Assembly (NCBI GenBank): GCA_950097015.1
Contig: CATNEN010000009.1
Coordinates: 682,001 to 746,000 of the forward strand
DNA: 64,000 nt
Direction of reading: 5' to 3'
Source of the DNA: Macrostomum hystrix
Lineage: Eukaryota > Animalia > Platyhelminthes
This document shows positions 1-26,652 of the stretch, one piece after another. A model generated the notes under the pieces. The model made no database searches and was not told where the DNA came from. It was given only the letters and a program-made list of their open reading frames with translations. Both the position numbers and the translations under genes were made by a program. Every line of letters starts with the position of its first letter. The stretch's first letter is position 1.

Positions 1-656
1 TTTCAAAGGTAAGACTGTTCATGTTAGTTTTTGTTGCGGCGTATGTGCTCAAATGGCTGGGGTAGCTCTACCCTCGTCGTGCTCTCTGATTTGTTCAGGG
101 GTAGGAGCAGCTTTGCCTGAATACTCTGAGGTGGATCCCATCTTGCGTGCTCGTTCGGTCTCACCAGTTGTGTGCTTCGCCTCCACTGAGCCCTTGCTCT
201 ACTCTGCGCATATTTAAAGCACCGCACTAGTAAAGGGCGGTGCCGGTGCCGGTCCTACTCCGTACGAGAACTCTGCGCACTCTTTAGTGTCTGCTTATTC
301 AGTATTTTCCCGGCGCGCATATCGCCCAGCCTGCGAGACAACATAACCAATTCGAATGGTGCTTTTCGATTGAACACATTGTTAACTCGTGGTCAGCAAA
401 AGTCTGAATTTAGGTTAAGAACACGGGTTATATGACTTATTTCAGTGATCTGGATTCATCAATATTTTCAATCATTCAATATTAATTACTCAATAAAATA
501 CTCAATCGCCCAAATGTTGGCTACTTCTGCAGTTCATATAAACAATGCAATACAACATGCGTTCACACATGATGAAATAATAGACACGAATTCATTAAGC
601 ATGCCGCGTAATTAAATACATTTTAACTTCTAACAAAAATTTTCTGTATCTTGCAG

Positions 657-2387
657 ACGAGCTACCATTTTTGGAAGCCATTTATAAAAATTTGCCTGAC
701 GATGAGCGCCAGCGGCTACAAGCAAAAGCCGCACAATTAAATCGTGAAAAAGAGGAAGCTATCGGATGCGCAAAACTACGGCGTTCTGCACAAGATTTGG
801 TGAGAAAAATGTCGCTTGGATATGCATTGAATTTGTTTTCGAATTATAAGTGTTTAGACTGTTTCGATAACTATCAATAACAGGTTTAGTAAATCCCTAA
901 AGATTCTTTAAACTAAAGTAAAAATCCAATCAAACCATTTGTTAGATTCGGCGAGTAACTTCGGCAGGTGGTCAAGCCACGATCATCCTGAAAGTGCCTG
1001 AATTGCCCGAAATTCAAGTGTTCGAGACCCCTGAATGGGCGGGGCTCGTGGCTCGAAGCCAAATTACTGACGTGAGAGTTTAGTTTGTAATGTTATTATA
1101 ACAGTGATGCTGATACAGCATTTTTATTGGCGAAACCCTAGGAAACACCTGACCGTCTCTATTGGTTACGCAAGTTTTTATTGCGCCATTGGACAAAATC
1201 ATACCAGTCTGAAGGTCCGTCAGGGGGAGCACGACATTTTACTTCTGACATTTGATTACCGGCGACATTAGACTTCCAACAATTTGACATCCAGCAATTT
1301 GACAACCAGAAAAATTTAATGGCCAGTGTCGTTTGACAAAACAATTGACTAAATTATATATATTTAACTCATATAAAAACAAAAGTTAAAAGACAAAATC
1401 ATAAGTTTTTAATGATTTTTATGACTGGGTAAACTTTCAACGTTGTGAAGTTTCGAGTTTGTGAATTCCCCCCCCGTAAACAAAACTTATGATTTTGCTT
1501 TTATATCACTGGCCATTAAGCTTAGCTGGCTGTCAAATGTCGTAGACCCTCCTTCGGGTGAACCTCAAACCTTTTTACGGTTAACCTGGCTGCTATCTTT
1601 CTCAGCCAGGTGTGTCAGATCTCTTTTCACGAGCTAGGTACATCCTTCTGCTATTTAAATGATCAATTTTGCTTGCTTTATCGCGATGTCAGTCTTAAAA
1701 AGTGTTTCGTTGCGATAAAATAATGTATACATTTTACTATATTTTAGCTTGCCCTTCATCGGAGCACCGATATAGACGACATGAGTGTTGTCGAACTAAG
1801 GAAAGTGGTCGCCAAGCAGTTACAAGCCAAATTTCGTAAGTTTCTTGTTGCCACAGCTATGAGTGTGTTTATTCAGCCAATTACGAACATTAAAGATTTA
1901 AAAAATCAGAACTCGATCAAATATAATAGTTTTAATTGCTCATGCCTACTTTCTGTTTTTCTAATTAGGCGCCGCAAACGGAAAAGGTAGGCTTATTTAT
2001 AAGTCTTATCCTGCGCAAGGTAAATGGACGAAGTGGCCTGCCGGTGTGCCGAATAATGTGGAGATTGCTCATTATTCACAAGAGCAACTTCGAACTATCG
2101 CGAAGCTCATCCCAAAAATCGAGTTTGTTCCAACTGGTCGGCCAGAGAAAAGAGGCCGTTCAAAGCGGCTCTCCGTCGATAGCGTTCACGTTCAGGCATC
2201 AATACCGGTAGCTGAAAATCAGGCTACGACGAAACCGGTCTGCCAGAGTCCTCCATCTCTAAGCTCTCCGATGCCCTCGCAAGTCAGCGCGTCTGGTGTT
2301 AAATTCAGAATTTTGACACCTAATGGCCAGGTGTCCGTTTCTGGCCAGCATAATTCGTGTATTAAAAAGATCATTCGTTTGTGCTAA
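657..2387 (+). CDS. Spliced gene, 5' end unresolved; HMG-box-like helix plus a WPxGVP-containing C-terminal domain; probable accessory gene of the KDZ element
   Basis: Exons 657-799, 946-1071, 1748-1835 and 1969-2387 have GT/AG ends and continuous phase (0,0,1). Translation: ELPFLEAIYKNLPDDERQRLQAKAAQLNREK..AQDL|IRRVTSAGGQATIILKVPELPEIQVFETPEW..|LALHRS..KF|RAANGKGRLIYKSYPAQGKWTKWPAGVPNNVEIAHYSQEQLRTIAKLIPKIEF. YKNLPDDERQRLQAKA resembles HMG-box helix 3. A possible further upstream exon lies at about 533-607. Confidence 0.6.
1223..1552. mobile_element. Fold-back MITE-like element in an intron
   Basis: Three nested inverted-repeat pairs: gggggagcacgacattttac / gtcaaatgtcgtagaccctcc at the termini; taatggccagtg (about 1319) / cactggccatta (about 1507); aaaatcataagtttt (about 1396) / aaaacttatgatttt (about 1483). 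No coding capacity and no clear TSD. Confidence 0.6.
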
Positions 2388-2429
2388 AGCTTTTTCTTAC
2401 AAGACTTACTGATAAATTCGCATTTCTAG

Positions 2430-2480
2430 TATTTTATTATTTAATTTTTTATTATTTTATTATTTTATTATTTTATTATA
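2430..2480. repeat. AT-rich microsatellite (TATTATTT)n
   Basis: Tandem attattttattattttatt tract just downstream of the stop codon at 2387. Confidence 0.6.
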
Positions 2481-2599
2481 GTATTCTATTATTTACGAAA
2501 TGCTCACTAACCCTTATGATTAGTTAGTTTATAATTACAAAAAATTGTTGATCAAATTTTCTATATGCCGAAGATACTCGTGCGTCCATTCCTATTCTA

Positions 2600-3869
2600 C
2601 GAGGGTTGTCCTGCGAAATGTGGGACAGGTACCATAAATTATAAACAAACAATTGAAACGAAACAACAACTCTGTCACTTTTAAACATAATCTCCGCCCT
2701 TCTCAATGCAACGCTGCCATCGCTCCAGCCGCTTGTTGAAGGCCTCAGTGAACTGGAAAGCAGCCATGAGGTTGGTGACCCCCTCCCACGCAATCTTGAC
2801 CTCCTGCAAGGTGTCAAACCGGCCACCGGCGACGCAGTTTTTGATATGTCGGAATAGCCAGAAGTCCGCAGGGGACAAATCAGATGAGTAGGGCGGATTC
2901 GGCAACACCCGAAAGCCTCTTCTGGCAAGAAACTCCCTGGTGTGGCCGACACGTGTGTACGGGTATTGTCATGCCATTTGCGTCGAATGTGATCCCTCAA
3001 CGAGTCAAGTACAGTGCAGTACTCACTGTTGACTGTCTGGCCCTGCTCTACATAATGTGTGTAGACAAGGCCCTGCAGCTGCAAGTCGAAAAAACATAGC
3101 CATTGTTTTCTTGGCACTGCGGGCCTTTGTCGGGGCATTGGCACCCACTGCTTGGACTGGTTCTTGGTTTCTGGAGTCACGTAGTGAAGCCATGTTTCAT
3201 CAGAAGTGATATTCGCTGCATAAAGCCCAGCTCACCGCATCATCCGAAAGAAGTCTTGAGCACAGCGTTTGCGCTCCCTGCTGTTTTCCTCCGTGAGCAG
3301 GTGAGGCACCCACCTGGCTGACACATTGCTTGAGCTACAGGTCACGGACAAGAATGCCATGAATTGTCTTGGGAATCCCAGATTCATCTGAGAGCTCCCT
3401 GGCAGTGAAGCGCCTGTCCTCTTCAATCAGACGAGCAATAATCTCGATGTTTGCTGGGGTCCGGACAGTCGGGTCCCTGTTCTTTCCTCAACCACCAGAA
3501 CCATCGTGGCCAGAGCGCACTTGTTCGTAGATGTAGTAAACCTGGCTACTGGACAAAGCATCATCCTGGTGGATGTCCTGCAGGTGGCAAAGACACTCGA
3601 TCGTAGACTTTCTAGCTTGGTAGAAATCGAAACCGAAGCGACAACGATATCTCGCTGTTAAACCACTTTGTCAGATTAAGAAACGTAGGGGTAGGACATG
3701 GGTATGAAACTTTTTAGTTGCTGCCAAGTCAGAGCTGAAGTTTTTGAGCAGAGGCTTTGTCCATAGGCTAAATAATAGTTGCTCTTTCTAGTGTAAAACG
3801 AATTTTCATGATATGCATGAATAGAAATGAGCAATAACCACAGTCCTATATTTCACCAGAAACCCCTCG
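2600..3869 (-). mobile_element. Mariner (D,D34D-type) transposon, full length 1270 bp, transposase pseudogene
   Basis: Imperfect TIRs cgagggttgtcctgcgaaatgtgggac / cgaggggtttctggtgaaatataggac are flanked by TA at 2598-99 and 3870-71. Minus-strand fragments: HTH region, ARWVPHLLT, TSDETW, HDN, YSSDLSPADFWLF, WQRCIEKGGDYV. Several stops and frameshifts. Confidence 0.92.
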
Positions 3870-5438
3870 TAGCTATTAAAAAAAATTGCTGACAATTTAA
3901 AGAAAAAAATGTGCTAGTCAAAATCCAGTTGTGCTATTTTGGAAAATGGTGCCTAAGTTTAATTCCCTTAAATTCGCGTTGCTGTTTTAACTTTAGCTCT
4001 TAAGCAGGACCTTGCGCATAATCATTTTCATGTATAAAGGGTTAGGATTAAACTGTTTGTTTTTGCATGTCGGTAGGTCGTACGCTCCTACATATTACAT
4101 AATCCTTGATTATTCACTCCTCTAAATCGATTTTCCCGTAAACTGATTTAAAAAAGTTCGAAAATGGATAGCCGGTAAGGCCGGACCTGTTATCTATTTA
4201 CTATGAATCTTTACGATATTTCTGTGTCCGAGTTGCTAATACGAACTTATATACTGACACTAACTTTTGCCATCAAAATCGCATTTTAAACAAATAAACA
4301 AGATTATGAATTTCTTTCCTACTCGTAGTCTGTTTTTTGCGCAACACAGCTTTTAAATCCTACAGATTAGTACGCATCTAAAAAATAATAGACGTACTTT
4401 TCGGATCTCAAATACAGTTTTTCTCTGATACATTTCATTTCCCTGTATCTCTGTTTAAACTAGTTATCGCTGGTTAGTTTTCGTTATTTCTAATTTTGCG
4501 AAGCTGAGGCTCCTGCAATTCCTATGCAGATGGTCAATATACGAGCTCGTAATATTTTGAAAATTCCACAAAGAACGCCATTGCTGCTACATGTAACCCT
4601 ATGGACCAAACTCCAGAAAATTGATGGATCAGCTGGCTAGGAAAGCTAGAAAGCTAGTTACCCAAATTTGATGGAAACATTTTTAAGGGGCTGGCAAGTC
4701 ATTGCGCTCATTGAAGGCTGCTTCCGAGTGCCTGATGGCGTGCACGGCATTGTGTTCTAATGAGCTAGGTAAACTTACAAGATCTGGGCGACTTGCTTTA
4801 TCGTACAAGATATTAACTTTTATATCTCGCAAGATGAAACAGACTATAAAATATCTTACTAAACGCTTTAAGTCGCGTATTTTCTTAAATCTATTGTTGA
4901 GTGTGTCATAAATGATTATTTAATTAGAACAACACTAGCCAAATAACAAAACGAATGTTGCTCGTACCTCCACTCCTAGAAGATCCTGCAAGAACCGAGC
5001 AGATAGAGAAGAGCTTCTAAGAATAGCACAACAGACAAGATCTGTCAAGTTTGAGCAACGTACAGAATGTCATCTTGGGCTGTTGCCGCTACCACATCGC
5101 CGCCATCCTGCTAGACTGCAATAGAACTTGCCTGATCACCTCGCCCACCTATTGAGCAATGAAGCAAAGCGATTTTAATGACTCAGAATAAGTTTTCCAG
5201 CTTCAAAAGAGACAGACAAGAAGAAACTTTTTACTCTATGTTTTCGTTTTTCAGGTCGAAAAAGCAAATAGGGCCGCATACGCAATACTGAAGCTGACGA
5301 AAAAGTAGAGTTTCACGATCTTGATTAATTTTTTGTGTATCGCTTCCAAAATGCGAGTCAATTAATAAACTCGTTATAAAATGTGTTCTGTTCGATATTC
5401 TTTGAGGAATAGAGTTGAAAATGGACAGACTGCTAATA

Positions 5439-5672
5439 TCACATGTGGTTGGCATTTTTCATTGGTTCCTAGTGACTTTGCGAAAGTGGCTAGTCAAACT
5501 CATAGACCCCCAACAACCGAATTTGGCCGGATACTTTAAAGATAATTCAAGTGCACCTATTCCGATTTACTTCGGCGTGTAAAGTCGAATTTCGGCGTCC
5601 CTAAGCTTGTCCGAGTCGAAATAAAAAATTGCAGGCATTTTTTCATAATTTAGGCACTTTTTCGAACCCCGC
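5439..5672. repeat. Direct repeat copy 1 (about 234 bp)
   Basis: tcacatgtggttggcatttttcatt...gcactttttcgaaccccgc, repeated at 6336-6571 with scattered substitutions (about 90% identity by eye). Confidence 0.9.
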
Positions 5673-6335
5673 TACTGTCAGTAGTATATTGGTGGCCCAA
5701 TAGATTTGAGCACAGTTTATCAAGTCGGATTTCCTACACGACTGAGTTGGGTTCATGATTACAAATGATTTCTACTCGAACTTATTAACCTGGAAAGTCA
5801 CCTAGAAAATTTGACGAAATACACAGGGGAGATACACTGTTCACTGGGTGACATTCTGACGCCGCAGGCTGTCTTTTAGACTCCGGTTTTCGACGGGGAT
5901 CTCTTCTACGTCTATCCCAGAGTACGGGACATCAAATCCCATCGAGATCCATCAAAATTAAGGAGCATCTCGAAATCACTTTTGTCAGTGGTACCCCAAT
6001 CAAAAAGACAAGTCATGCCAGGCAGGGGTGTACCGACTTTGAGCGGACTCCATTTGAGAACCGCTATATCTAGAGAGATCAGACTGATGTCGTCTGGTAG
6101 GCCAATAAATGGCGCGTCGGATGTCGTTGATTCCGTCGATAGATCTGTAGTCGTTGTCTGCTGGCAGCCGGTCTAGCAAAGTGGCATAATCTACTCATAG
6201 CGCTATCCATTAGGAGGTACCTCTGACACTCTAGAGATCATTTGACAGCCATCTGGTGGGTATTTCTCGACGATCTTGGTGTCGTTAGATAGCTCTAGAC
6301 ATGCTCTACCGACGTGCGTTTGTCCGAAATCAACG

Positions 6336-6571
6336 TCACATGTGGTTGGCATTTTTCATTGATTCCTAGTGACTTTGCGAAAGTGGCTAGTCTAACTCAT
6401 AGACCCCCAACAATTGAATTTGACCGGATTACTTAAAAATAATTCAAGTACACCTATTCCGATGTACTTCGGCGTGTAAAGTCGAATTTCGACGTCCATA
6501 AGCTTGTCCGAGTCGAAATAAATGAGTTACAGGCATTTTTTACATAATTTAGGCACTTTTTCGAACCCCGC
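6336..6571. repeat. Direct repeat copy 2 (about 236 bp)
   Basis: Matches 5439-5672. Confidence 0.9.
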
Positions 6572-9342
6572 AATTGTCAATTCAATTCATTTAATTGGCG
6601 GGCCTCTCAGTGCAGGCAGAGAAGATATAAAACTCATAATGAAATAACTGAGCATTTACGGAGCCGAGAGGAGACGGGCGCTCAATTGAAGCTCATGGAG
6701 TATCAGGATGGGTTAAAAAAATAAGCGGAGGAGGTGGGTGCTGTGGTCTACTACAGAGAAGACTCAGGTTGATTTATAAAATGTCCGCGTACGCTGAGCG
6801 CAGAGGGGCGTTTAAATTTAACTTATTGAAATTGCACCTGACTGAGTGGAGAGAGGAATGTGCTTACAAATAAGTACGGCGCGGAGAGCTAGATGTCCTC
6901 AAATTCACCTGATTTAAAGATTTAGGTTAGGGTTAGGTTACGGATACGTTAGTTCAATGGATTTTGCGTGATAGGAGCTCGCACGAGAGAAGTTCGCACG
7001 AGAGGAGTTTTATCACCTTAATCTCCTCCGAAGGAGTTTCGCTTCTAATAGAACTAAAGAGCGCACCCTACTGGACGCCAGATACGGTCCACGAAGAGAA
7101 CAAGCTGAGATAGCGAAACCAGATCGAATCAGTGGAGCGAGCGCGAGGGGGAGAGGCCGGTTAAAATAGGCCATATAACATTATCATAATTAATATCCAG
7201 GCACGGGGTACGTTGGCTAGAGTAGACAACACAAAGAAAGAACGCACACTGAAACGTGGCGGCGTTTGATTGTCTGATTGATGAGAAATAATTCATTACA
7301 GTTGCGCAAGCGGCTGATGTTCGTACTTTAACGTTTACTGCCATAGTAAAAATGATGTGAATTTTGCATGCATAACTACAGAATTATACAATTATAGACG
7401 CGCAAAAGCAGAGGCGCGTTGCACGCAGCAAGTGACGTCACAGGCTTAATTAGTGTACGAGCAGCCTTTCCGGAGTAAATCTGAGCTACATTTACATAAA
7501 TGCTCTCAGCCTGTTTGTACATGTATACAAAACGATTGTCGATGCAATATAGCTATATCTCGTTTACTATTTTGGCATTGCTAGTCATGTCAGAGAGAGG
7601 ATTCTACAGTAGCAGAAGATATGTTGAATGAAACATTCGTTGATGAATTGTGCTTGATCATTTTGGTAGTCATGGAAAGTATTCTATTTCAGGACTATTC
7701 ACTCTGCATGTAATCGTACCTTGCTTTTAAAGCAAGCAAGATAAAGAGAATTATTATCTGCAAAGCGTTTTCACGATTTCTTTCAACATTTCTTTTCAGA
7801 AGTAGAACCATCTGGAGGCACCACTAAAAGGGGCACAAGAGTCACCCTGATCACGGAAGGCGCCACGCCTCGTCGCATTGCCGGTTGCGGCTGGCCGCCT
7901 TGCAGAATAGACAGTCGTCCTCGTCAGCCTCATTGTCGTCAGCCCCGACTTTCTTTCGTCTCACAGGGTACGCTGCCTGACTAACTCCGTGTCTGCTTGG
8001 CGCTCTTGAGAAACACCGGACCAAGTCGCTCACCCCTTAAACCGAGAGATATGGAGTCTGCTCCTGTTGCTCGCTAAGTCAGTCCTCGGTGACTCGCCCT
8101 GCTCCTCGCCATTCCTGCAATCCTAGCGTCACAGGATCGGACTGTAACCTCCGACCAGGAATAACAACAACAAATATGTCCATGTCAATTTCATTATATA
8201 ATAAATAATAGACGAACGAGCCGTATTATTACATTCAAATGTAAAGAAGAGCAGAAATGAGAGCATTTATAGAATTATTATCTGGTTTCTATTTATATCC
8301 AAATAGTTTTCACAGTGGAAGCTAGCTAACGTAAGTAGGTTAAGTGATCGAGATAGGCATCTCAAAATTACAAACTTATTTAAATTACTTTGAAAGTGAA
8401 TCAGATTTCATGTCACAAAAATAACGGCATGTGAAAATAAACAAAATATAGACTGTCCTGTGGATGAGCAAGAACAGAAAGTTTATGCAGCGAAAGAAGA
8501 CAAATTATATAAACTATAATATAATGTACTAAGCCCTAAGGAAATGGTAGGTACTGATCTGCGAAGCAATTACCTATTCCTGCTGTGATACCGATCAACT
8601 TCAAGTCAAGTCAGATCAAATCAGAAGCGGAAAAAATATTTCATAGACATGCAAAGCCGGCCACTTAGTGAAAAAATATTTCATTGACGTAGTCGGTCTA
8701 ACAACTCCTATTTAGTAAGAGAAAACACAAAAATTGAAACTTTTAAATAAGCCTAGGTCATTATATAGCTAGTACTCACACGACAAACGACTATACCAAT
8801 TGAGCAATGATGGACATATAGTTAAAGATTTTGAACAGTCTAACACGTCTAGCATGCAAGCTTTACAACAACACAGCTAACAGAAGCATGAGTAGGTCCT
8901 AAAAATTTTCACAGAGCACAATTAATACACTCGATTTGCATATAGTAAAATGAAAGATACAATAGCAAAGAGTATAGTTCAACATTTAGTAACAAAAATA
9001 ATAGACGAGCAAAGTGATTTTTGAAACAACTAGAAGATTAGGCTTTTAAATAGTTTTGAAATTTATACTTTGCCAAGCCGAAATATGCGTGAATTTAGAA
9101 ATCAATATGAAAGTATGAGATACAAGCAATAAAAACGCGAGTTATCAGTGCTCAAATAAGAACTGATAAGGCTGACTTCAGTTTTAAGTTTTAGGTTTAA
9201 GTCTTTAGGGTTTTAAGTCAAAGTTTAAGATAAGGACATGAAAAGCAAGCTGCTCATGGCATAGCGACAAATAATTTTTAAACGTTTTAAACATCGGAAC
9301 GCACAGCACTGCATACTTCAGGAGTAATAATTTCAGCCATTG

Positions 9343-12300
9343 TCATTCACTGCATACTTCAGGATATTCGAACTCCGCATCAGTTGCGCCAGGAAGATTC
9401 ACACGTAGACGCTGTTCGAGACTCAAAGCCAGTTGAGTCTCGGAGGGAAACTCTGCAGCATGTCTTTGCAGCAGATGCAGCAGCCCACGCAGTCGGAGGT
9501 GCAGAACAGTCGATAAAGGATGCACAGCTGGGTGGGATGCTTCAATCTCGACTAAAGTGCTATCGGCGGATGCTATAAAAAATAAACTGCACCGCCTGAC
9601 TTCACAACGTAGAAGTCTAACTTCTTCAAAAACACGCCTTCGGAGTGCATTAATGCGGTACACCGTCATATCACTGCTTGTACAGGCATCCAAGTTTCCG
9701 ACACGATATTGTTGAAAACCTGCGGACTCGAAGTCGCTGAAGTCTTCAATCAGCAACTGCTCTTCTAAAGGCAGGTGCCTGTTGAACCCGCGAAGAGTTT
9801 CCACCTTTTTCTTTTGCAGTTTTTTTAGCGCGAATTTCAGCCGCTTGGCCATTTTCTGTCCCCGGTAAGTTGATAGATGTTGAACAAGATGCTGTCGCTC
9901 TGTCTCTAGTCTCGCTAAGTCATTAATGACAGCCTCACGACTTCCGACCGATTGGGATTGTCCTGCCAGGACATAGTCGCAGAAACGGCCGGCACAGCTT
10001 TCGGCGTAAGCCAAAAATGAAGACAGTGTAGCTGCAAATGAAAGCGTTTAAAGTTTGAGGAGCTATAGTTAAGCCAACTAAACTGAACAATTAATTACTT
10101 AATAACAATATTTGTAATAAGAAATTAGAGTTTTACATTAAATGGCAGCTTTTAAGCAGCTTAGAGAGTACATTATCCGTTGGAAGCATTGTAGGAAATT
10201 GAAAATAAATTAGAATGGTTGGACAAAGTTGACAAAAAGAGCTTTAGTTTGAGCTTAAAAATGTGACGCTGCAGCTTTCAGTACCAAAATTGTAGGATTC
10301 AATTTAATTTTTAATTATTATCATAAAATATACATAGACCTGAACTTACGAGGTAATGCGAGTTCCTCTGCTATCTTTTCGACATCGCTGTCGCATTTTT
10401 TCTGCGTTTTCTCAAGCAGACGCTTGCGCTCAACGAACCAAGAGGCTGGAAAAGTAGATGGAAAGCAAAAAGTAGTGATGGAAATTGAGGATAAAAAAAT
10501 TCGGATTTTCTGGATGTCTAAAAATTTTACATTAAGTTTGAATGGTTGACAATCCCTACGTCCCTACGTTTTAGAGCATACAACTCACTGATTTCCTGAA
10601 TGCCTGTGACATTTATCGATGTTGCCAGGTGATTCAGAAACGCGCGCCTGTTCGGCAGCGTCATCTCTTTCGTTTGAGCTGCATAACGGCGAAAGTGGCT
10701 CCACAGCCTTTCACAAGCCTCACCGTCAGTAAGTCCTACATCACTTAGGAATCGGATGTTATTCTGTAACTGACACTGCCAGTTGTGGCCGTAAGCATGA
10801 AAAGCAGGAACAGCAAACCGAAGTCGTGAGTTGTCACGGAAATGTGACTGAAGCTTGCAAGCAATGTCGTAAGAGACGACGATGGGTGTATCCTGATGCT
10901 TCACGACGGCATCTTTTACTGCAGTCACGGCATAGTTGAGCCTCGAATATAAATGAATTTTTACAGGAGCCACGGTTATGTTAGCATTTAACAGTCAGCA
11001 AAAATAGTTAGCCTAAACCCCATACTGTAAAAAAATGATGCTCATTCTTCAATATCAAAGTCATAGTCTTTTCCAACCGTTAGAAACCAGCTAAACATCT
11101 TGCATGTGATAAGCAATGTTTAGCAGGTACAGAAAAAGCTATAAAGCATTAAATATTAACGATTTACCCTAGTAAACTAAATTATTCAAGAAAATGCCAT
11201 TTATAAAAATAATACTTTAATTACAAATGAGGTCTAAGCAGACAAAAATTATACCAATTTACCTTTCACCGTGTGTTACAATGTCTGAAAGTGAAACAAT
11301 GCTTGAGTGTCGGCAAGAGGTAGCAAAAAGACCAAACACGTCAAGAGAGCCTTCATCCTTGGGAGTTAAAGTATCCTGGCCTCGTCCTCCAGCTCTCCAG
11401 TTTGGGCAGCTACCAGCCGCAGCAGAAACCTCGCGAGACATATCGGTGTCCAGAAAAAAATCTGCAACATTTGTTTTAGATGGCGAGCTAGTAGCCGATT
11501 TTCCAGCAGAAGATCGGTGCCTCATACCGAAACAGCCGTCAAGTTGTAGAACGATTGGGGCGTCAAGCGTCTCGGATTGTGAAGAAACCTGCATTCGATA
11601 AAATCTCTCTCTCTATATATATATAAAACATAGGCTTCCGTTGTTTGTCGCACCCCTAGTATAATTTAATCACACCCATTACCTTTTTCTCTTTTTCGTG
11701 GAAAATTTGAAATATGAAAAATAAAGCTTGGTGCGCTTATGGCTTTTGATACTTTACTGAAGGTATAATTCAGGCATAGTACCCTACTACAAGTTTTCTT
11801 TTGCTCGATTGCCACGAAGTAGTAAGTGAACTTTCGCACTAGCAATTTAGAAAAATTAATGAATTACCGTGAAACAGGCAGGACAACCTGGCTTGCCTTG
11901 CCACTGAACAGACGTCAGAAGGCTTCGAAACGCTCTCATGCTGCCAAAGCTGTTTAGGCGACGGTAAATATTAGCCTGAAGATTAAGTTGGGAGAAAAAA
12001 TACTTCAAATATCGGATAATATGCGCTCTGGCGTCGCCAACGTTGATGCCAACGGGCCGGAGTTCGCCCGATCGCTGGCCCTGCGGCGCGCATCTGACAC
12101 GGCCCTTACATATGACCCTGAACCTTGCGACTAGCGGGCCGTGTAGCTTGTTGTTGTTGTTGTACGCCGCCACCGTGGCACTGCGGTCCCCCGGTCACTG
12201 GCCCTTGGTGGCTCGGGCTGCACAAGGCACGGCCCGGCCCAATGGCCCGCCCGTCCAACAAAGGTCCCATCCGTGGTGGTTGCACTGGCGCAAGGCTCAC

Positions 12301-15300
12301 AGTTGTTATCCTCACGGCTGAGACTTGTGGACGGGCTTGCCGCTGGGCCACCGGGATCATCCCCTGCTGACGTTACTTGGTGACGGTATTTCCAGCATTT
12401 TCGTGCCCGTGACCTTCCCCTCACACCTGACAGTCCTGCGACGGTGGCCAGCCCAAAGGGGGTCAGACCGGCGTCAGGGGCTGTACGGAGGTCTGCTGGA
12501 AGTGGGGCTGTTGTTGTTGTTGTTAAAGGAATTAAAGGGGGAAGGGCGATTCTTGTAAGGCTCTGCTCTTTGTTTTACGAGATCTGTTAAAGTAAAAAGG
12601 AATTCTTGTATAGACCGATCAAATGTTTGTATTTGAACGATAAAATTAGAATGGTAGAAATGCCGTAAGCTTTTATTGTCAATTAGAAATACTTGCGAGG
12701 GGTGTCCCAAAAAAAGCGGGAATAATTGATTTACAGGCTGCTTATCGAGCTAATATATTTTACGTAACTACTTTCTCCAGAAAAACTTTCAGCTGTTTTA
12801 TTGCTTTCTTAATTACGTTCAAATATTCAGTCATTCAGACAACTGGAGAACCACACGGTTGAGTTTTCATTTTCCTTGTTTTTCCTGTACGATTTTTTGT
12901 GTTACGACAGTCAACAAGGTCAACGCCAGTTCGTGTACTCGTAATGGAAATGCGATATGGTGTGCCAGCTGACTGAAATTCATGGTGTGAAAGCAATATC
13001 GAAGACCGATTTGTATCGCTGGCTTGAAGACTTCAAAAATGGGCAAACAGATGTTGCTGATGACACCACCAACCGCGGCCGCCCGAGTTCCCCATCAATC
13101 AGGGCACTGATTCAAAGGGCAAAGGACATCGTTCAGGAAAATCCCCGGGTGACCACGAGAGATTTGGCAGACCGCCTGGGTAGCCCGAAGACCTCAGCAC
13201 ATCGAATCATGTCTGAAGATCTCGGCCTGGTGAAACTGATGGTGATATGGGTGCCCCTTTTGCTGACGAAATAAAGGCTGCAAGAATGAGGGCTTGCATG
13301 AGAATCTTGAGCTTGCTCGAGATGCAGGTGGATGTCACGGTGGTGGCGATGCTGAGTGACCAGGTTTGCTGTAAATACTTTTGGCTAGACTTGGTGTAGT
13401 TGTACCCTTGACCTCATGCTTCTCTTTTTGTTATACCTTTTCAGCAAATTGTTGCTTTTACATGATTCAAGAAGCAATATGAAGGTTTCTCAATAAGTTT
13501 CCGGAAACACAGTTCTAGGAATTATATTTAAAAGTTTTTTAGGAAATGATGGAGGAATGTGTTGAGACATAAAGCATAAAATTTCTGCTTGCTGTATTTC
13601 CATGTTCACTCGCAAGAGAGCCCATACTGACGAGAACCAGGACCCCCCTCCAAGCCTGCGTGACAAGAGAGCCAGGCTGCTGCTGCTTTTCCGCCTGGGA
13701 AATTCTCCATCCCAGTGCCTGCAAATGCTTCAAACGGCGCTTGGAAGTGAAGCCCCAAGCCAGAGCGTCGTGTATGAGTGGGACGCTCATTTTCGGACTG
13801 GTGCATTCGGTCTTGACGACGATCCGCGTGAAGGACGTCCGAATTTAGCCATAACGGCTACAACTGTGGCTGCCTCTGCTTGACGATGACAGATGTGTGA
13901 CCACTCGTGAGCTCGTGCAGAATGTGGGGGTGTCAGATGGCACCATGAATTCCATTCTGCACGATCGACTTGACGTACGCAAGCTGTGCGACAGATGGGT
14001 ACCCCATCAGCTAACTGCCGAGCACAGGGCAGCCCGAGTCAGTTTCTGCCAGTCTGCGCTGCGTCACTTTAACGCAGGAGCCTCACCGCTGGTGTCCAAC
14101 GTGCTGACAGGTGACGAAACCTGGATCTACCTTTACGATCCAAAAACTAAAGCTCAGAGCCGGCAATGGGTTACTGATGGTGAAGAAGTGCCGGTAAAAT
14201 TCGCACGAGAACGCAGTGTCGGGAAAGTGATGGTCGCCATTTTCTGGTATGATATGTTAAAATTAGTTTTTACGGAAAATTATTAAGCAGCCCTCGTAAA
14301 CCCATCGAAAATTGATCTTTCTGAGGAAAGTAGTAACATCAGAATTTAACTCGATCATCTAGCTAAGTAATATACCAGGCCTATTATGGGGCTTTAAGCA
14401 AATAAGCTGAGTGATAACTATTTTAATAAAAGGGTTCATATTGTTTACCCTAGTATATAACTAACACAGATCGTTAATTCAATATGTTCTTAGAATCTTT
14501 AGCACTTTAAAATCAAAGCGGTTAAAGCGCTAGCGAATATTCTTACTCCAGGCAAACACCACAGTAAAGAACGCTCAGCTGCAAGGGCGTTGCATGCGCT
14601 GAACAATGATGTCGCACACTTTTGCATTGTCGATTCAATGCGAAGCAAGACGCTGATGCGAATAGCAGAAGGCTTTACGGCTCTGTTGATATTCGATTGA
14701 ACAGGCCAGAACCCTTGTGAAATTAGTGCAGATTGTAAATCTGTACAAATATCGCAGATTTCAACCTGAGCGTCTTCTTGGAGTCCTGTGCGTAGAAATA
14801 TTAAAATATTAATAGAAGAGATTTTGTATAACATATCTAAGCAAGCTGAAGCGGTGAAAAACATTTTAGCGATAAAAAAACTGCTTAAAATATTTTTTAC
14901 GTATTTTCCTATAATTTTACATTTTCATTCACAGTTCACAAGGCCATATTTGGCCTTGTGAACGAAATAAAACTATATCTTACATCATTCCGATAAAATA
15001 GATACTCAGGAAAGACTGTAGAGGGGAATCTCTCTAGAACTCCAACATAGTTTATTTGTGATTTTGCAGACTATGAATAATTGATAAAAATTAATTACCG
15101 TTGTCAACAACAAGTGATACTTGACGAACAGAAAAGCCTGCATCGCAGGAGCAGCGCCTACGGAGCACAGCTTTTGTTGGCAAACGAACATACACCGAGC
15201 CCTGAAGGTGATGTGGGTATGTGTAATTTAGGACTTGTAAAGATTTAGTAATAGTCCGAACAAATAGTACAAAATGCAAATTAAAATAGGAAATGAATTT

Positions 15301-16070
15301 AGAGGATTGGATCATTGTAAGGATATATTAACTATATTATTTGCTTATGATTCTATTCATGTGCTAAATATTAATTAAATGTTTATTGCTTGTATAAGTA
15401 ATACCATTCCATTAAAATCGATCCTTCTTCATAAAACAAGAATTTCATAATGGTTGTGATATTTGATAAAGGAGAATGTATGTACTATTTATTCGAAACT
15501 ATTGTCATAACCAAGTTTTAAGTACAGTACAGTTATAATAAAACTTACATTCCAATGCTCAATACTGTGAGGTGGGTTGTGCTGGTGCTGCTGCTTCAAA
15601 CATGACTCACAGACTTGTAGCAGGTGGCAGGCAGAGCAGCGAAAATTAGCAGTGCTACTATTGCATAGCATGCAGCTGCCAGACTCCACGGACATTGAAC
15701 GTGAAAATGCTCGCAAAATAGCATCTTTGGATTGATCCCACTCTTGATTTGATTGTTGAATGCGGCTTTCATAGTCATGACAGTCAACGTTATATGATTG
15801 CATATAGGTAGAATCAGACGTTTTTTCTGCAGCAGCAGCAACATAATACTCTTCTGCTAATGGGTGCGACCTTTGGCAACAAAAAGCAAATAGTTGTTAG
15901 GACTTTAAACATGGAAAATGTAGGCAATAAACAAAAAAGAAGCAGACTTACATTTCAAAATGCTGAGATTTTGCTGATGCACCAATGCAAATTCGCTGAC
16001 TTCGATTACCTGGGCTCCATGTTTGAACAAAGTGTCCTTTTAGACCCTTTGTTGGTTTCTTTGGAGCCAT
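9343..16070 (-). CDS. KDZ (Kyakuja-Dileera-Zisupton) transposase with N-terminal CxC cysteine clusters, 9 exons, about 815 aa
   Basis: Exons 16070-15952, 15870-15549, 15201-15099, 14785-14547, [12583-12581 + 12044-11868], 11588-11263, 10941-10568, 10445-10350 and 10031-9343 are all GT/AG, phase-consistent and sum to 2448 nt. Motifs: CxxC..FRCxxC..CxxC..HxxxPxHxIExWN (CxC2-like), GFWP, CPAC, LDGCF, CRH..GE, YDIAC, PAFHAYGHxxxC, GLTDGEACERLWS. Exon 5 is split by the 12048-12580 insertion. Confidence 0.9.
12048..12580. mobile_element. 533-bp GC-rich insertion inside KDZ exon 5, flanked by a 3-bp ATC duplication
   Basis: Minus strand reads tttttactttaacag|ATC [533 bp] ATC aac gtt ggc gac. Removing the insert and one ATC gives LPG|INVGDARAHIIRYLKYF in the required phase 0. 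No TIRs; internal (TTG)5 tracts at about 12149 and 12510. Confidence 0.7.
12696..13325 (+). mobile_element. Mariner fragment (left TIR plus N-terminal HTH), 3' truncated
   Basis: TIR-like cgaggggtgtcccaaaaaaagcggga at 12696. ORF 12957-13274 reads YRWLEDFKNGQTDVADD..RGRP..ENPRVTTRDLADRLG..IWVPLLLT. No matching right TIR found. Confidence 0.8.
13480..14296 (+). mobile_element. Internally deleted mariner (817 bp) with both TIRs
   Basis: Left tgaaggtttctcaataagtttccggaaa and right (reverse complement) cgagggctgcttaataattttccgtaaa, with TA on both sides (13478-79, 14297-98). Transposase 13602 to about 14247 (REGRP, DRWVPHQLT, TGDETW, KVMVAIFW) has one frameshift near 13870 and lacks the C-terminal catalytic half. 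Confidence 0.9.
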
Positions 16071-17324
16071 TACTGAAAAAAATTATATGCAATAAATTTA
16101 TAAACATTTCATTTACCATGGTATTTAAGTACTTGTCAATAGAAAAAAATTCAGCACTTCAAAAAATGCTAGGGGCCTATACCAATAATGTCAAAAAATG
16201 ATGTACCAAGAGATTTGATTTTCCCACACATAAAACAACACTTAGGCCTAACAATACTTAATATTTCTTCCCTTTATAACCATATCTCAAATGACTCACA
16301 ACTGAATTAGTAGATCAGCCCTTTCATATTTGTACTGAATAGACACTTTTAAGCTACTAGGCACAACGTTACAACTTACCTGGGGTTTTTTGTATTAAAG
16401 AATTTCTTATGATTTACTATCATTGCTTTACTCCACTTTCAGTATTACATTCAGCTACTGATTCATTCAGCTAAATATAGCTGAATGTAATAGTTATGAG
16501 TGAGGAATTCACATTTTGCATTTTTGCATATTTGCATTAAATTTTTTTATCTTAAGGCTATCTTCTTTATATAATGTTCATACCATTGAGATTGAATCAT
16601 ATTTATCTGATATGTAAGCACTAAGCAATACAATAGGAGAAAAACTAAAAAAAGCAAGTCTGAAAACTAGGTCTAGGCAAGCTGTCTTGAGCAGAGCAGC
16701 ATGTTAGCAACATTTTACCACCCAGTAAAAACCGCTAACTTTAGGTTAGGCCCACCACATTGTAATGTCAACATAGCTAGGACTAGCATTGTAGATGAAC
16801 AGTAAGAAGAAGTCATAAATTTGTAGCCATTGAATTATCCAATAGGCCCTAGCTAAAAAAATTGGCCTGCTAATGCAATGAGTTACCATTTAAAAATCTA
16901 AATAACAATTGGGCCTACCTACATGGAGTAAACTACAAATACAATGGTGGACTGAAATATTTTAAATATATGAAGGCAAGTCTAGGCATACAAGTAGATG
17001 GTAGGCGAGACATGAAATGCAGCATTCTGAATCAAAATAAATAAGCAATTAGCTATAAGTACTAGCCTACCAATAATTTCAATTTTCAATAGAGTAGTCA
17101 ATTTTATCAATGGATTTTGACAACTGCTCGTCATTATTTTTTTATTCTTAAATTCAATTTTACGTTTGTCAAAAATTCGTTTTTATTTCCTTAACTTCGA
17201 CTTCGATAGGCCTAGCTTAGTTTCAGTTGTAAGGAAAAGAAGGACATGTTTAGATGCCTGCAAACATTATTAAATACAACTTTGTTTTATCCAACGAATT
17301 TTATATGCATTGCATGACACTCGA

Positions 17325-17400
17325 GGAAACTACATGCAACGCTACATTTATACATGTAGTTTCCCCGATTAACACCATTGGGAGTGTGTGTAGTTTCCCC
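17325..17400. repeat. Cluster of GGAAACTACA motifs (one inverted pair plus a third copy); candidate transposon subterminal region
   Basis: ggaaactacatg 17325-17336, catgtagtttcc 17353-17364, tgtagtttcccc 17389-17400. Confidence 0.6.
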
Positions 17401-17926
17401 CTTTACGGAGCGTAACACGGGTGACTATTTACAGTACCAACACATTAAAAAAAATATCGGTAACAAAAAAGTATTTTCAAACCTTTTAAATATGCGTTTC
17501 ATCCATTTACACATAGCTTTTTCATAAAATACATCAATTAAACAAACAACTTTGTTATAGATATTTAATATGCCGCTAGCTATTTCATTTGTAACTAAAC
17601 ATTGCAGGCTGTGGTCGTTAATGCAAATGTTAAGATGTGTCAATAAAAACTAGTCATCAGTGATGTTTTATATGTTTTTATTTTGATCTCCTTAATAAGA
17701 ATTTTCTGCTTGCGGATAAGGATTTAACGAAGAATGCAATTGTCAAAGTAAAGGTTTCATGGAAACATTTTACGTGTTAAATTGTGCAGTACTGAATTAC
17801 AGATTAACATTCACATAAAAATATCTTAAAACAAATCCCCAATTTTTAAATAAGTACTGCTTTCAAGCCAGTGTTAAAACTAATTGCTCCTGTCGCTTTT
17901 ATTATCGCTTTGCATATTTAGCAACA

Positions 17927-20102
17927 ATGATTTCAGACTTAATCATTGCAGTGTAAGTTAATCTTCATTAATACGAGTATTAAACTAAACATTTTACTTT
18001 TTTACCTAATCAATTTTTGTAAGTAAGTTCATTTTTGCTACGCATTACTTGTTTTAAAAAACCTTTCTTGCCTAATCTAAATTCTTTGGCTTACTGTAGC
18101 AATATTAACAATGTTGGAACTAATAATCACACTCACACTCACAGTCCATCATGTAGCTGGTGTTGTCTGCCAAAGTTGGCATAGGCCTACATAGTTGGTG
18201 TGCACTTGCTTCACACTGAATTCTTGACTGAGCTTGGCTGAATGTACACTGAACTTAGTGCTCCATGTGGGCATAATGCAATGCACCACATATCTAGTAA
18301 GAAGTAGGCCTAGGGTTGTTGACAAAAGAAATTTGGCTTTGTTTTATAGCCTATGTAGGTATCTTTTTTTATTGGCATAAAGGCTCAGAAGCCTATTTAG
18401 ACTTATGTAAGACACAAAATATTTTGTGTTCAGTCTACGGATCTAGGACTTATGTATTGTAGCCTAATAATTGTCTACTTAGCTATTTAGGTAGACTAAG
18501 CAACTTTCTCGACTAAGTCAGATAGTTAGCTTATACAATAGAATTTTAAATTATTTTAAGTTCTCTTATTGTCTAGGTAATGTAGAAAATAGATAGCTAA
18601 GCCACAATCTTTTGGTTCTCTTGATGAAAGAAAAATATACCTAGCTTAGCTTTTTTATTTTAATTTTTTTAGCTACTTACCTAGCTAGTACTAGCTTTAA
18701 CCAGCTTCCTTTTTGAGGAAAATTTACCTAAAAATAATTTTAATGTTTTCAAGCAGATTTTATGTTCTTAACTTTTTATCACATGGCTCAATGGCACAAA
18801 TACAAAATATCTTTTAGCAATTGTGTGCCACTAGGTTTCACAATAAGCCACAATTCATAACAAAAAAAGCTTGGTTCATATGAAATTAGCTAGCATAGCT
18901 TTACTTTGTTGATTATGGCACAAAAATATACGTATGTCACAAAAATGCACAGTCTGCATCGACAAGCTAACTGAATGGAGTTTTGCATTGAATGCTCACT
19001 TATACTCTATATTGTAGAACACTATTCATCAATGCCTGTGCTATCCTTAACTTCAAACTGTGAGTATTAGCAATTGGCTGGTGCTTTTGCTTGGAAATTA
19101 GAAGGCCTGTCCTGCCCTTTAGTGCTATGTGGAAGGCATTCAGTCTATAGGTTTTTTAAGTCTGTGGGCTGTCACAGTCTGTAGGCTGTCACAGTCTGTG
19201 GGCTGTCATAGTCTGTGGGCTGTCACAGTCTGTGGGCTGTGATAGTCTCCATGGTGTCGCAGTCTGTAGGCTGTGGTAGTCTCCATGCTGTCGCAGTCTG
19301 TAGGCTGTGATATTCTGTAGGCTGTGGTAGTCTGTAGGCTGTGGTAGTCTGTAGGCTGTGGTAGTCTCCATGCTGTCGCAGTCTGTAGGCTGTGATAGTC
19401 TGAAGGCTGTGGTAGTCTGTAGGCTGTGGTAGTCTGTAGGCTGTGATAGTCTGTAGGCTGTGGTAGTCTGTAGGCTGTGGTAGTCTGTAGGCTGTGGTAG
19501 TCTGTAGGCTGTGGTAGTCTGTAGGCTGTGGTAGTCTGTAGGCTGTGGTAGTCTGTAGGCTGTGGTAGTCTGTAGGCTGTGATAGTCTGTAGGCTGTGGT
19601 AGTCTTTAGGCTGTGGTAGTCTGTAGGCTGTGGTAGTCTGTAGGCTGTGGTAGTCTGTAGGCTGTGGTAGTCTGTAGGCTGTGGTAGTCTGTAGGCTGTG
19701 GTAGTCTGTAGGCTGTGATAGTCTGTAGGCTGTGGTAGTCTTTAGGCTGTGGTAGTCTGTAGGCTGTGGTAGTCTGTAGGCTGTGGTAGTCTGTAGGCTG
19801 TGGTAGTCTGTAGGCTGTGATAGTCTGTAGGCTGTGGTAGTCTTTAGGCTGTGGTAGTCTGTAGGCTGTGGTAGTCTGTAGGCTGTGGTAGTCTGTAGGC
19901 TGTGATAGTCTCTAACGCACACCAAATCGCCAACTCCAGTCGTGATGACAAGCAGCACCAATTTGAATTTGACGACGCGGGCCGCGCTTCATTTGGCGAC
20001 AAGACGCGCGAGTTTCTACGCAGCCTTCGCTACTTCCGGGTCTTTATCGGCCTGTGGAACATCTTCGTCATACTACTCATGCTCACGATGTTCAGTAGTT
20101 AG
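17927..20102 (+). CDS. SMIM7: Small integral membrane protein 7 orthologue, 3 exons, 76 aa
   Basis: Exons 17927-17952, 19018-19059 and 19940-20102 (231 nt, phase 2,2) give MISDLIIAVTLFINACAILNFKLRDDKQHQFEFDDAGRASFGDKTREFLRSLRYFRVFIGLWNIFVILLMLTMFSS. This closely matches the SMIM7 pattern (..[34 protein letters not shown]..), recalled from memory. Confidence 0.9.
19159..19911. repeat. 17-bp minisatellite in SMIM7 intron 2
   Basis: Unit agtctgtaggctgtggt, about 44 copies, ending about 28 nt before the acceptor at 19939. Confidence 0.97.
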
Positions 20103-20632: not shown

Positions 20633-23600
20633 CCTTCAGTGAGTGGCTTCTCCACTGCCCTTCAGTGTGTGGCTTCTCCACTGCCCTTCAGTGAGTGGTA
20701 TTGGCTTCTCCACTGCCCTTCAGTGTGTGGTATTGGCTTCTCCACTGCCCTTCAGTGTGTGGTATTGGCTTCTCCACTGTCCTTCAGTGAGTGGCTTCTC
20801 CACTGCCCTTCAGTGTGTGGCTTCTCCACTGCCCTTCAGTGAGTGGTATTGGCTTCTCCACTGCCCTTCAGTGAGTGGTATTGGCTTCTCCACTGCCCTT
20901 CAGTGAGTGGCTTCTCCACTGTCCTTCAGTGAGTGGCTTCTCCACTGCCCTTCAGTGTGTGGCTTCTCCACTGCCCTTCAGTGAGTGGTATTGGCTTCTC
21001 CACTGCCCTTCAGTGAGTGGCTTCTCCACTGCCCTTCAGTGTGTGGTATTGGCTTCTCCACTGCCCTTCAGTGAGTGGTATTGGCTTCTCCACTGCCCTT
21101 CAGTGTGTGGCTTCTCCACTGCCCTTCAGTGTGTGGTATTGGCTTCTCCACTGCCCTTCAGTGAGTGGTATTGGCTTCTCCACTGCCCTTCAGTGAGTGG
21201 TATTGGCTTCTCCACTGCCCTTCAGTGAGTGGTATTGGCTTCTCCACTGCCCTTCAGTGAGTGGCTTCTCCACTGCCCTTCAGTGTGTGGTATTGGCTTC
21301 TCCACTGCCCTTCAGTGAGTGGCTTCTCCACTGCCCTTCAGTGTGTGGTATTGGCTTCTCCACTGCCCTTCAGTGAGTGGCTTCTCCACTGCCCTTCAGT
21401 GTGTGGCTTCTCCACTGCCCTTCAGTGTGTGGTATTGGCTTCTCCACTGCCCTTCAGTGAGTGGCTTCTCCACTGCCCTTCAGTGTGTGGTATTGGCTTC
21501 TCCACTGTCCTTCAGTGAGTGGCTTCTCCACTGCCCTTCAGTGTGTGGCTTCTCCACTGCCCTTCAGTGAGTGGTATTGGCTTCTCCACTGCCCTTCAGT
21601 GAGTGGCTTCTCCACTGCCCTTCAGTGTGTGGCTTCTCCACTGCCCTTCAGTGTGTGGCTTCTCCACTGCCCTTCAGTGTGTGGCTTCTCCACTGCCCTT
21701 CAGTGTGTGGCTTCTCCACTGCCCTTCAGTGAGTGGCTTCTCCGCTGCCCTTCAGTGTGTGGTATTGGCTTCTCCACTGCCCTTCAGTGAGTGGCTTCTC
21801 CACTGCCCTTCAGTGAGTGGCTTCTCCACTGCCCTTCAGTGTGTGGTATTGGCTTCTCCACTGCCCTTCAGTGAGTGGCTTCTCCGCTGCCCTTCAGTGT
21901 GTGGCTTCTCCACTGCCCTTCAGTGTGTGGCTTCTCCACTGCCCTTCAGTGAGTGGCTTCTCCGCTGCCCTTCAGTGTGTGGTATTGGCTTCTCCACTGC
22001 CCTTCAGTGAGTGGCTTCTCCACTGCCCTTCAGTGAGTGGCTTCTCCACTGCCCTTCAGTGTGTGGTATTGGCTTCTCCACTGCCCTTCAGTGAGTGGCT
22101 TCTCCACTGCCCTTCAGTGAGTGGCTTCTCCACTGCCCTTCAGTGAGTGGCTTCTCCACTGCCCTTCAGTGAGTGGCTTCTCCACTGCCCTTCAGTGAGT
22201 GGCTTCTCCACTGCCCTTCAGTGTGTGGCTTCTCCACTGCCCTTCAGTGAGTGGTATTGGCTTCTCCACTGCCCTTCAGTGAGTGGCTTCTCCACTGCCC
22301 TTCAGTGTGTGGTATTGGCTTCTCCACTGCCCTTCAGTGAGTGGTATTGGCTTCTCCACTGCCCTTCAGTGAGTGGCTTCTCCACTGCCCTTCAGTGTGT
22401 GGTATTGGCTTCTCCACTGCCCTTCAGTGAGTGGTATTGGCTTCTCCACTGCCCTTCAGTGTGTGGTATTGGCTTCTCCACTGCCCTTCAGTGAGTGGCT
22501 TCTCCACTGCCCTTCAGTGTGTGGTATTGGCTTCTCCACTGTCCTTCAGTGAGTGGCTTCTCCACTGCCCTTCAGTGTGTGGCTTCTCCACTGCCCTTCA
22601 GTGAGTGGTATTGGCTTCTCCACTGCCCTTCAGTGAGTGGCTTCTCCACTGCCCTTCAGTGTGTGGCTTCTCCACTGCCCTTCAGTGTGTGGCTTCTCCA
22701 CTGCCCTTCAGTGTGTGGCTTCTCCACTGCCCTTCAGTGTGTGGCTTCTCCACTGCCCTTCAGTGAGTGGCTTCTCCGCTGCCCTTCAGTGTGTGGTATT
22801 GGCTTCTCCACTGCCCTTCAGTGAGTGGCTTCTCCACTGCCCTTCAGTGAGTGGCTTCTCCACTGCCCTTCAGTGTGTGGTATTGGCTTCTCCACTGCCC
22901 TTCAGTGAGTGGCTTCTCCACTGCCCTTCAGTGTGTGGCTTCTCCACTGCCCTTCAGTGTGTGGCTTCTCCACTGCCCTTCAGTGAGTGGCTTCTCCGCT
23001 GCCCTTCAGTGTGTGGTATTGGCTTCTCCACTGCCCTTCAGTGAGTGGCTTCTCCACTGCCCTTCAGTGAGTGGCTTCTCCACTGCCCTTCAGTGTGTGG
23101 TATTGGCTTCTCCACTGCCCTTCAGTGAGTGGCTTCTCCACTGCCCTTCAGTGAGTGGCTTCTCCACTGCCCTTCAGTGAGTGGCTTCTCCACTGCCCTT
23201 CAGTGAGTGGCTTCTCCACTGCCCTTCAGTGAGTGGCTTCTCCACTGCCCTTCAGTGAGTGGCTTCTCCACTGCCCTTCAGTGAGTGGCTTCTCCACTGC
23301 CCTTCAGTGAGTGGCTTCTCCACTGCCCTTCAGTGAGTGGCTTCTCCACTGCCCTTCAGTGAGTGGCTTCTCCACTGCCCTTCAGTGTGTGGCTTCTCCA
23401 CTGCCCTTCAGTGTGTGGTATTGGCTTCTCCACTGCCCTTCAGTGAGTGGTATTGGCTTCTCCACTGCCCTTCAGTGAGTGGTATTGGCTTCTCCACTGC
23501 CCTTCAGTGAGTGGTATTGGCTTCTCCACTGCCCTTCAGTGAGTGGTATTGGCTTCTCCACTGCCCTTCAGTGAGTGGTATTGGCTTCTCCACTGCCCTT

Positions 23601-26600: not shown

Positions 26601-26652
26601 GGTATTGGCTTCTCTACTGCCCTTCAGTGTGTGGTATTGGCTTCTCCACTGC
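20633..26652. repeat. 6-kb minisatellite of interspersed 26-bp and 32-bp units
   Basis: gtggcttctccactgcccttcagtg(a/t), with or without a tattgg insertion. All ORFs called here are repeat artefacts. Confidence 0.98.

Follow-up and report, generated by a model that had tools for sequence, protein, structure and literature searches.

To our knowledge, few DNA transposons have received as little study as the KDZ (Kyakuja-Dileera-Zisupton) elements, whose ends, target site duplications (TSDs) and activity are for the most part not established. Zisupton, for which horizontal transfer has been proposed, is a group of DNA transposons with several exons that occurs in fish and other animals as well as in fungi and algae (PMC9297572). 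The TSD is 8 bp long in Zisupton and Dileera; Kyakuja has a 7-bp TSD and CA..TG termini and is described without terminal inverted repeats (TIRs) (Kojima 2025, PMC12730594). The Zisupton-like elements of Pristionchus pacificus have TIRs, and no TSD was detected for them (PMC9297572). We found no paper on KDZ elements of flatworms in the literature searched. The present study concerns a stretch of 64,000 nucleotides of the flatworm Macrostomum hystrix (assembly GCA_950097015.1, contig CATNEN010000009.1, positions 682,001 to 746,000 of the forward strand; the window in the following), for which an initial annotation had proposed an intact, intron-rich KDZ transposase, Kyakuja/Dileera-like, that was recently active or domesticated. 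The nine-exon gene in question very probably codes for the transposase (784 aa) of a complete KDZ transposon of the cut-and-paste type, which also carries a second gene and several nested insertions.

The transposase gene runs on the minus strand from 16070 to 9343 of the window and is interrupted by eight introns, all of which begin with GT and end with AG. The joined exons comprise 2,355 nt, corresponding to 784 amino acids and a stop codon, and contain no internal stop. This reproduces the nine exons and eight junctions free of frameshifts and stops that had been annotated initially; the length given there, about 815 aa, exceeds that of the model by about 30 residues. The donor of exon 1 is GTAAGT at 15951 and keeps the reading frame; an alternative donor at 16010 broke the frame and was rejected. 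An acceptor-like YYYCAG is located 2 nt upstream of the ATG and is conserved in the window copy and in a related copy from Macrostomum lignano that is described below, and this site may accept a spliced leader. An open frame continues upstream of exon 5 as far as 12173 and was rejected as coding sequence, the paralogues and the M. lignano copy aligning from the acceptor onwards only. Four paralogues and the copy from M. lignano share the exon 5 acceptor at 11975, which is ancestral; the homology extends 45 nt into the intron. Since these five relatives use the same acceptor, exon 5 is intact and was not split by an insertion that supplied a rescue acceptor; the insertion at 12045-12583 lies within the intron.

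Searches were run exon by exon, and the M. lignano protein PAA89046.1 (P0001; 630 aa), the best relative found, was used in place of the complete protein. Exon 7 matched the Pfam KDZ family (PF18758, curated cut-off 26.6 bits) with an E-value of 2e-29 and 103.3 bits at profile positions 102-216, and exon 6 matched it with 1.8e-6 and 28.2 bits at positions 4-98, so that the two exons jointly span positions 4-216. P0001 covered the same positions of the 217 in one stretch (5e-41, 141 bits). In the 784-aa model, whose residue numbers are those of P0001 minus 1, the motifs are found at positions 164 (CxC), 292 (CPAC), 313 (LDGCF), 389 (CRH), 430 (YDIAC), 454 (HAYGH) and 478 (DGEACER). An alignment of 20 KDZ proteins revealed as invariant the D of YDIAC, both H of HAYGH, the D, G, E..E and R of DGEACER and the C and H of CRH, among them D432, E481, E484, C390, H392, H455 and H459 in P0001 numbering. 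The D of LDGCF (D315) and the cysteines of CPAC were conserved in at least 90% of these proteins, and the near-invariant cysteines C193, C196, C293 and C296 (P0001 numbering) are present as well. The initial annotation had listed the catalytic, cysteine and histidine motifs as intact; all of them fall on invariant or near-invariant columns, and together with the Pfam match they uphold the assignment to an intact, intron-rich KDZ transposase. None of the Pfam families CxC1-CxC6 was matched by any exon at E ≤ 1 or by P0001 at E ≤ 0.01. A diverged N-terminal cysteine cluster is nevertheless conceivable despite the absent CxC match. Exon 2 showed an ANCHR-like B-box match (7e-5) that remained below the Pfam cut-off.

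The AlphaFold model of P0001 has a mean predicted local distance difference test (pLDDT) score of 70, with 80-90 in a core of the order beta1-3/alpha/beta4/alpha/beta5. VIA-align placed the Tn5 transposase first (Z 9.2 over 183 aligned residues), together with cores of retroviral integrases (Z 8-8.6) as further top matches; all matches listed are DDE enzymes, with Z values near 8 being borderline. Foldseek found no significant match for the same model (E ≥ 0.08). The model thus fits an RNase H-like fold, with borderline scores. In the mechanism that we propose, the N-terminal zinc-binding part, consisting of the B-box-like finger and the cysteine cluster, would read the repeat ends, and the RNase H-like core would cut and rejoin the DNA by means of D314, D431 and E480/E483 (numbering of the window protein). 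The long C-terminal helices would pair the subunits, and target cuts staggered by 7 nt would give rise to the duplication.

The gene is enclosed by an element with defined ends. With a length of 20,747 bp, the transposon occupies C9:678677-699423 (C9 being the contig of the window), its first base lying 3,323 nt ahead of window base 1; an inverted-repeat scan restricted to the window misses the TIRs because one arm lies outside. The TIRs measure 399 bp and are 99.0% identical arm to arm (3 mismatches and 1 gap in 399). They are flanked by a perfect 7-bp TSD, ACTATTT, and the element termini read CA..TG. Such TIRs, combined with a TSD, are the hallmarks of a class II cut-and-paste element. Five arms from two species (two each from the window copy and the M. 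lignano copy, and a solitary one on C33) share the terminal base, 5'-CACCCGTG..., and in four of the five a T precedes CACCC. If the T/A beside CACCC belongs to the TIR, the terminus would alternatively be TCACCC with a 5-bp TSD (CTATT). The sequence GGRAAACTACA occurs three times within the outer 100 nt of the TIR, and these repeats are candidate binding sites.

With its 7-bp TSD, 5'-CA..TG-3' termini and KDZ transposase, the element matches the fungal Kyakuja (PMC12730594), compared by description only. It differs from Kyakuja in its 399-bp TIRs and its animal host; moreover, Kyakuja often carries a TET/JBP gene, and none was seen here. With the fish Zisupton, as far as Bohne 2012 is relayed in PMC9297572 and PMC12730594, it shares the animal host, the multi-exon gene, the TIRs and repeated proposals of transfer; the TSD given there is 8 bp and not 7 bp as here (5 bp under the alternative terminus). 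In addition, Pfam CxC domains are found in the fish proteins but not here, and a quick tree places the Macrostomum proteins in a clade separate from that of the fish. The Pristionchus pacificus elements resemble the present one as invertebrate multi-exon KDZ genes with TIRs whose origin is ascribed to horizontal transfer (PMC9297572). They have, however, 18-31 exons, 1,166-1,367 aa, dozens of copies and no TSD that was found (PMC9297572), compared to nine exons, 784 aa, one copy and a clear TSD in the window.

Besides the transposase gene, the element contains a second gene in convergent orientation. Its conserved module, G.GRL.Y.KY..G.W..WP.GVP.D...L..W..R..I.F, recurs on the downstream side of the transposase in four further KDZ families of the M. 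hystrix genome (E 3e-11 to 0.015). The plus-strand open reading frames (ORFs) of at least 61 aa at 1-9342 showed neither a Pfam HMG box nor any other Pfam family, and the second gene had no match in a Pfam GTF2I search of its own genome, a per-member Pfam scan, a PDB sequence profile or the protein atlas. Several of the nested insertions lie in intron 4, which is 2,571 nt long and includes 2.1 kb of inserted DNA. The two mariners that had been noticed there are present as two Tc1/mariner-type fragments, accompanied by a third insertion. The coordinates of all features are given in Table 1.

Table 1. Positions of the transposon, its two genes and its nested insertions in window coordinates; negative positions precede window base 1.
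Feature	Position	Strand	Remark
Exon 1	15952..16070	-	ATG at 16070
Exon 2	15549..15870	-	B-box-like zinc finger
Exon 3	15099..15201	-	CSC motif
Exon 4	14547..14785	-	near-invariant cysteines C193, C196 (P0001 numbering)
Exon 5	11868..11975	-	CPAC; protein 100% identical to M. lignano
Exon 6	11263..11588	-	KDZ domain, first half: LDGCF (first catalytic Asp, predicted), CRH
Exon 7	10589..10941	-	KDZ domain, second half: YDIAC (second Asp, predicted), HAYGH, DGEACER (Glu, predicted)
Exon 8	10350..10445	-	found in gene model and M. lignano comparison
Exon 9	9343..10031	-	long helical C-terminal part; stop at 9343-9345
Second gene, conserved exons	1763-1840 (probable), 1965-2132; span 1763..2132	+	module match
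Transposon part inside window	1..17423		inverted repeat; shared terminal base in several arms
Left TIR (locus L026)	-3323..-2927 = C9:678677-679073		inverted-repeat match to right arm
Right TIR	17026..17423		outer end 5'-CACCCGTGTTACGCTCCGTAAAGGGGGAAACTACA on minus strand
Right TSD copy, ACTATTT	17424..17430		left copy at -3330..-3324
Mos1-type mariner copy, intron 4	13463..14302	+	about 485-bp internal deletion; family about 1,330 bp, 37-45-bp TIRs
Older Tc1/mariner-like fragment, intron 4	12688..13334	+	helix-turn-helix part only
GC-rich insertion, intron 4	12045..12583		12149-12522 81% identical to C7:12345865
Third mariner transposase fragment	2524..3180	-	nested in element, outside transposase gene
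Multi-copy repeat nested in element	5640..6579		repeat match

The M. lignano copy is located at 6646-16569 of NIVC01000166.1 (L037) and, with 9,924 bp, is about half as long as the window element. Its TIR arms (6646-6904 and 16312-16569) are 98.5% alike and 84% identical to those of the window copy. The locus holds all nine exons in the same order and at full length, except for exon 9, which is present up to residue 71, and every splice dinucleotide is retained. Placed on P0001, the exon peptides follow one another end to end; therefore an independent annotation uses the same eight junctions. Intron 4 of the M. lignano copy is only about 214 nt long, and the three insertions of the window copy are therefore absent there. 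The protein ends after residue 71 of exon 9, so that the last ~155 aa are missing, whereas the paralogues of the M. hystrix genome conserve exon 9 to about residue 200. Because this C-terminal part and the second gene are both missing, we regard the M. lignano copy as a probable deletion derivative. Overall, P0001 and the window transposase are about 89% identical, and in exon 7 the identity is 97%. Over 619 codons, the nonsynonymous divergence (dN) between the two copies is 0.055 and the synonymous divergence (dS) 0.36, resulting in a dN/dS of 0.15; the ratio is 0-0.16 in exons 4-9. In the introns, the 1,036 nt that can be aligned show 25% differences (K = 0.31). As had been suggested at the outset, the transposase lineage thus bears the signature of purifying selection. 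A second M. lignano fragment, P0003, is 93% identical and suggests that there is more than one copy in that species.

Selection on an intact gene would also be expected for a host gene that derives from a KDZ element and has been kept for a host function, the domestication that the initial annotation had considered. The element being single, the low dN/dS and an ORF that has stayed intact despite an old mariner in intron 4 would agree with this explanation. However, purifying selection is equally expected for a transposon that spreads between hosts. A domesticated gene would have lost its ends and would occupy the same locus in relatives; here the 399-bp TIRs are 99% alike and the 7-bp TSD is perfect, and the M. 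lignano copy is flanked by the same ends, has a different TSD and other neighbours, and adjoins a gene whose counterpart lies on C38 of the M. hystrix genome. Moreover, TIR-bearing fragments are present on C1, C33 and C37, and the M. lignano copy lacks the C-terminus. We therefore consider domestication very improbable, and annotations of the genome should mask the gene as a transposon instead of listing it among the host genes.

The low divergence of the two copies raises the question of how the element came to be shared. For the gene adjoining the M. lignano copy, the M. hystrix genome gave one match only, which lies on C38 and not on C9; the exon concerned has a proportion of synonymous differences (pS) of 0.66-0.68 and a dS of about 1.6-1.8 between the species. 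Two FSAF1 exons from another M. lignano locus, again with a single match each, gave pS values of 0.64 and 0.69 and a dS of 1.4-1.9. The host baseline in three exons is thus a pS of 0.64-0.69 compared to 0.29 for the transposase, and the dS of the element, 0.36, lies far below the 1.4-1.9 of the small host sample, i.e. the element is 4-5 times less diverged than the sampled host genes. For a third host gene (DUF5731, window 34213-35145), the M. lignano proteins are 53-60% identical in the conserved domain only. Other candidates did not contribute to the baseline: a 337-aa M. lignano ORF was rejected as low-complexity, a 97-aa exon had no match, and no further exons of the gene next to SWIB were found. 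At the DNA level the M. lignano flank gave no alignment with the M. hystrix genome, and its mapping returned only repeats, telomere-like arrays and one low-complexity match.

Since the element is far less diverged than the host genes and the two copies, differing in TSD and neighbours, apparently occupy different sites, we think that the two flatworms share the element through an ancestor much younger than the hosts and that horizontal transfer is likely. If, on the other hand, the element had already been present in the common ancestor of both flatworms, its low dS would be an artefact of an unrepresentative host baseline. The host dS values come from two genes only, and M. lignano is a recent polyploid in which orthology is harder to judge. 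Yet each host exon has a single match in the M. hystrix genome, all three exons agree in their high pS, and the transposase introns and TIRs align at 75-84% where the host flank does not align at all; the differing TSDs and neighbours likewise argue against vertical descent, which we regard as rather unlikely. Read as a horizontal transfer, the element provides a clean case for studying how KDZ elements move between animal species.

The window element is the only copy with a transposase gene of this family in the M. hystrix genome. At the protein level, at least 58 matches to exon 7 were found there, of which the best after its own locus is 64% identical, and the transposase exons have no other DNA match. 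The element hence represents a family separate from the other KDZ families of this genome, and it is the one among them with a close M. lignano counterpart. The other families are young and multi-copy: a five-copy family (C1:10141763, C1:11100462, C1:18654725, C8:3852696, C41:2838067) is 96-97% alike over at least 7.9 kb and has internal tandem repeats, and a pair (C31:53174 and C38:27784706) is 97% alike over at least 9 kb. Further occurrences of the TIR are an arm on C1 that is interrupted by a 7-kb insertion, the solitary arm on C33 and fragments on C37; the loci examined on C1 and C33 keep no transposase exon. The region C1:15728807-15764216, which contains the split arm, shares window positions 1988-3777, 4107-4827 and 16393-17345 at 79-88% and is probably an old, gutted sister copy. 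The window copy is thus single and has not been amplified recently in this genome. An intact copy with the gene exists, as the initial annotation implied, near-identical sister copies do not, and with a nearest paralogue of 64% identity its proposal of recent activity is not sustained.

Indications of age come from the mariner at 13463-14302, whose private branch is about 7% (a three-sequence estimate from identities). In a simulation of neutral substitution, an ORF of 2,355 nt remained open in 1.2% of the runs at 5% divergence and in 0.1% at 8%. This hints that the transposase ORF has been maintained since the mariner inserted; the hint is weakened by the TIR arms being 99% alike and by the mariner branch, which may partly predate the insertion. 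The arms are 98.5-99% identical within a copy and 84% between species, in conflict with the ~7% mariner branch. The much closer similarity within a copy suggests that the arms are kept alike, perhaps by conversion.

A two-gene KDZ transposon may have crossed between macrostomid lineages long after their split, with the single intact copy in M. hystrix still being mobile, a combination that we consider possible without holding it to be likely. Several points weigh against our main interpretation. Present activity is opposed by the lack of any other copy with the gene, by the insertions in intron 4, which add up to 2.1 kb, and by a length double that of the M. lignano copy; the M. lignano TSD is imperfect (CTCATT, 6 of 7 bases, one base apparently having been lost at the right junction); the host baseline consists of two genes (~335 codons) whose orthology was taken from single best hits; and the catalytic roles of D/D/E derive from conservation and a model of moderate confidence (pLDDT 70). 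It is conceivable that the element is a dead relic without a working enzyme, for example if the intron 4 insertions spoil splicing, and that the ORF is open for lack of time. The absence of near-identical sister copies from the genome, the swelling to 20.7 kb by nested repeats and a word search that returned no protein from the window locus would be in agreement with a relic. However, the ORF and the conserved residues are undamaged, as are both TIRs, the TSD and the 16 splice dinucleotides, and a 2.6-kb intron does not by itself prevent splicing; we therefore doubt this explanation. If the transposon did cross between lineages and the copy is indeed mobile, it would be the first animal KDZ element with defined ends, TSD and candidate binding motifs that can be tested for transposition, and a possible native vector in Macrostomum. 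One element offers an intact enzyme gene, exact ends, end motifs, a TSD and a second gene, plus a sister copy in M. lignano. The latter is a laboratory flatworm, and its sister copy together with the defined element makes a direct test of transposition possible.

An exhaustive search with exon 7 yielded 1,770 relatives. Other Macrostomum proteins ranked behind P0001. After these came proteins of molluscs, a nemertean, sea urchins, a jellyfish and fish, and the scores of Mucorales fungi were lower. No protein was recovered by a word search using exon 9. In a quick tree, which contained no labelled lineage references, four Macrostomum proteins formed a clade of their own, apart from a clade of fish (including Xiphophorus) and Branchiostoma. 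Pfam CxC domains were detected in the fish KDZ relatives, unlike in the window exons and P0001. A contig of 2,935 nt from the Logan assembly of SRR30276804 (L049) contains an uninterrupted KDZ ORF of 748 aa and is most likely a spliced mRNA of the sister family of the window element.

Besides the transposon, repeat arrays were observed at both loci. A 60-nt stretch of the M. lignano locus (L037:4553-4613) matches arrays at the contig ends of C9, C42, C41 and C7 with 92-94% identity, the matches being spaced in multiples of 6 nt. In appearance these arrays correspond to telomere-type repeats, in which case C9 would begin at a telomere some 680 kb away from the window. Just past the element, the window contains a tandem array of a 17-bp unit with 44 copies (19159-19911), and further on a 6-kb array with a 26/58-bp unit in about 211 copies (20633-26669).

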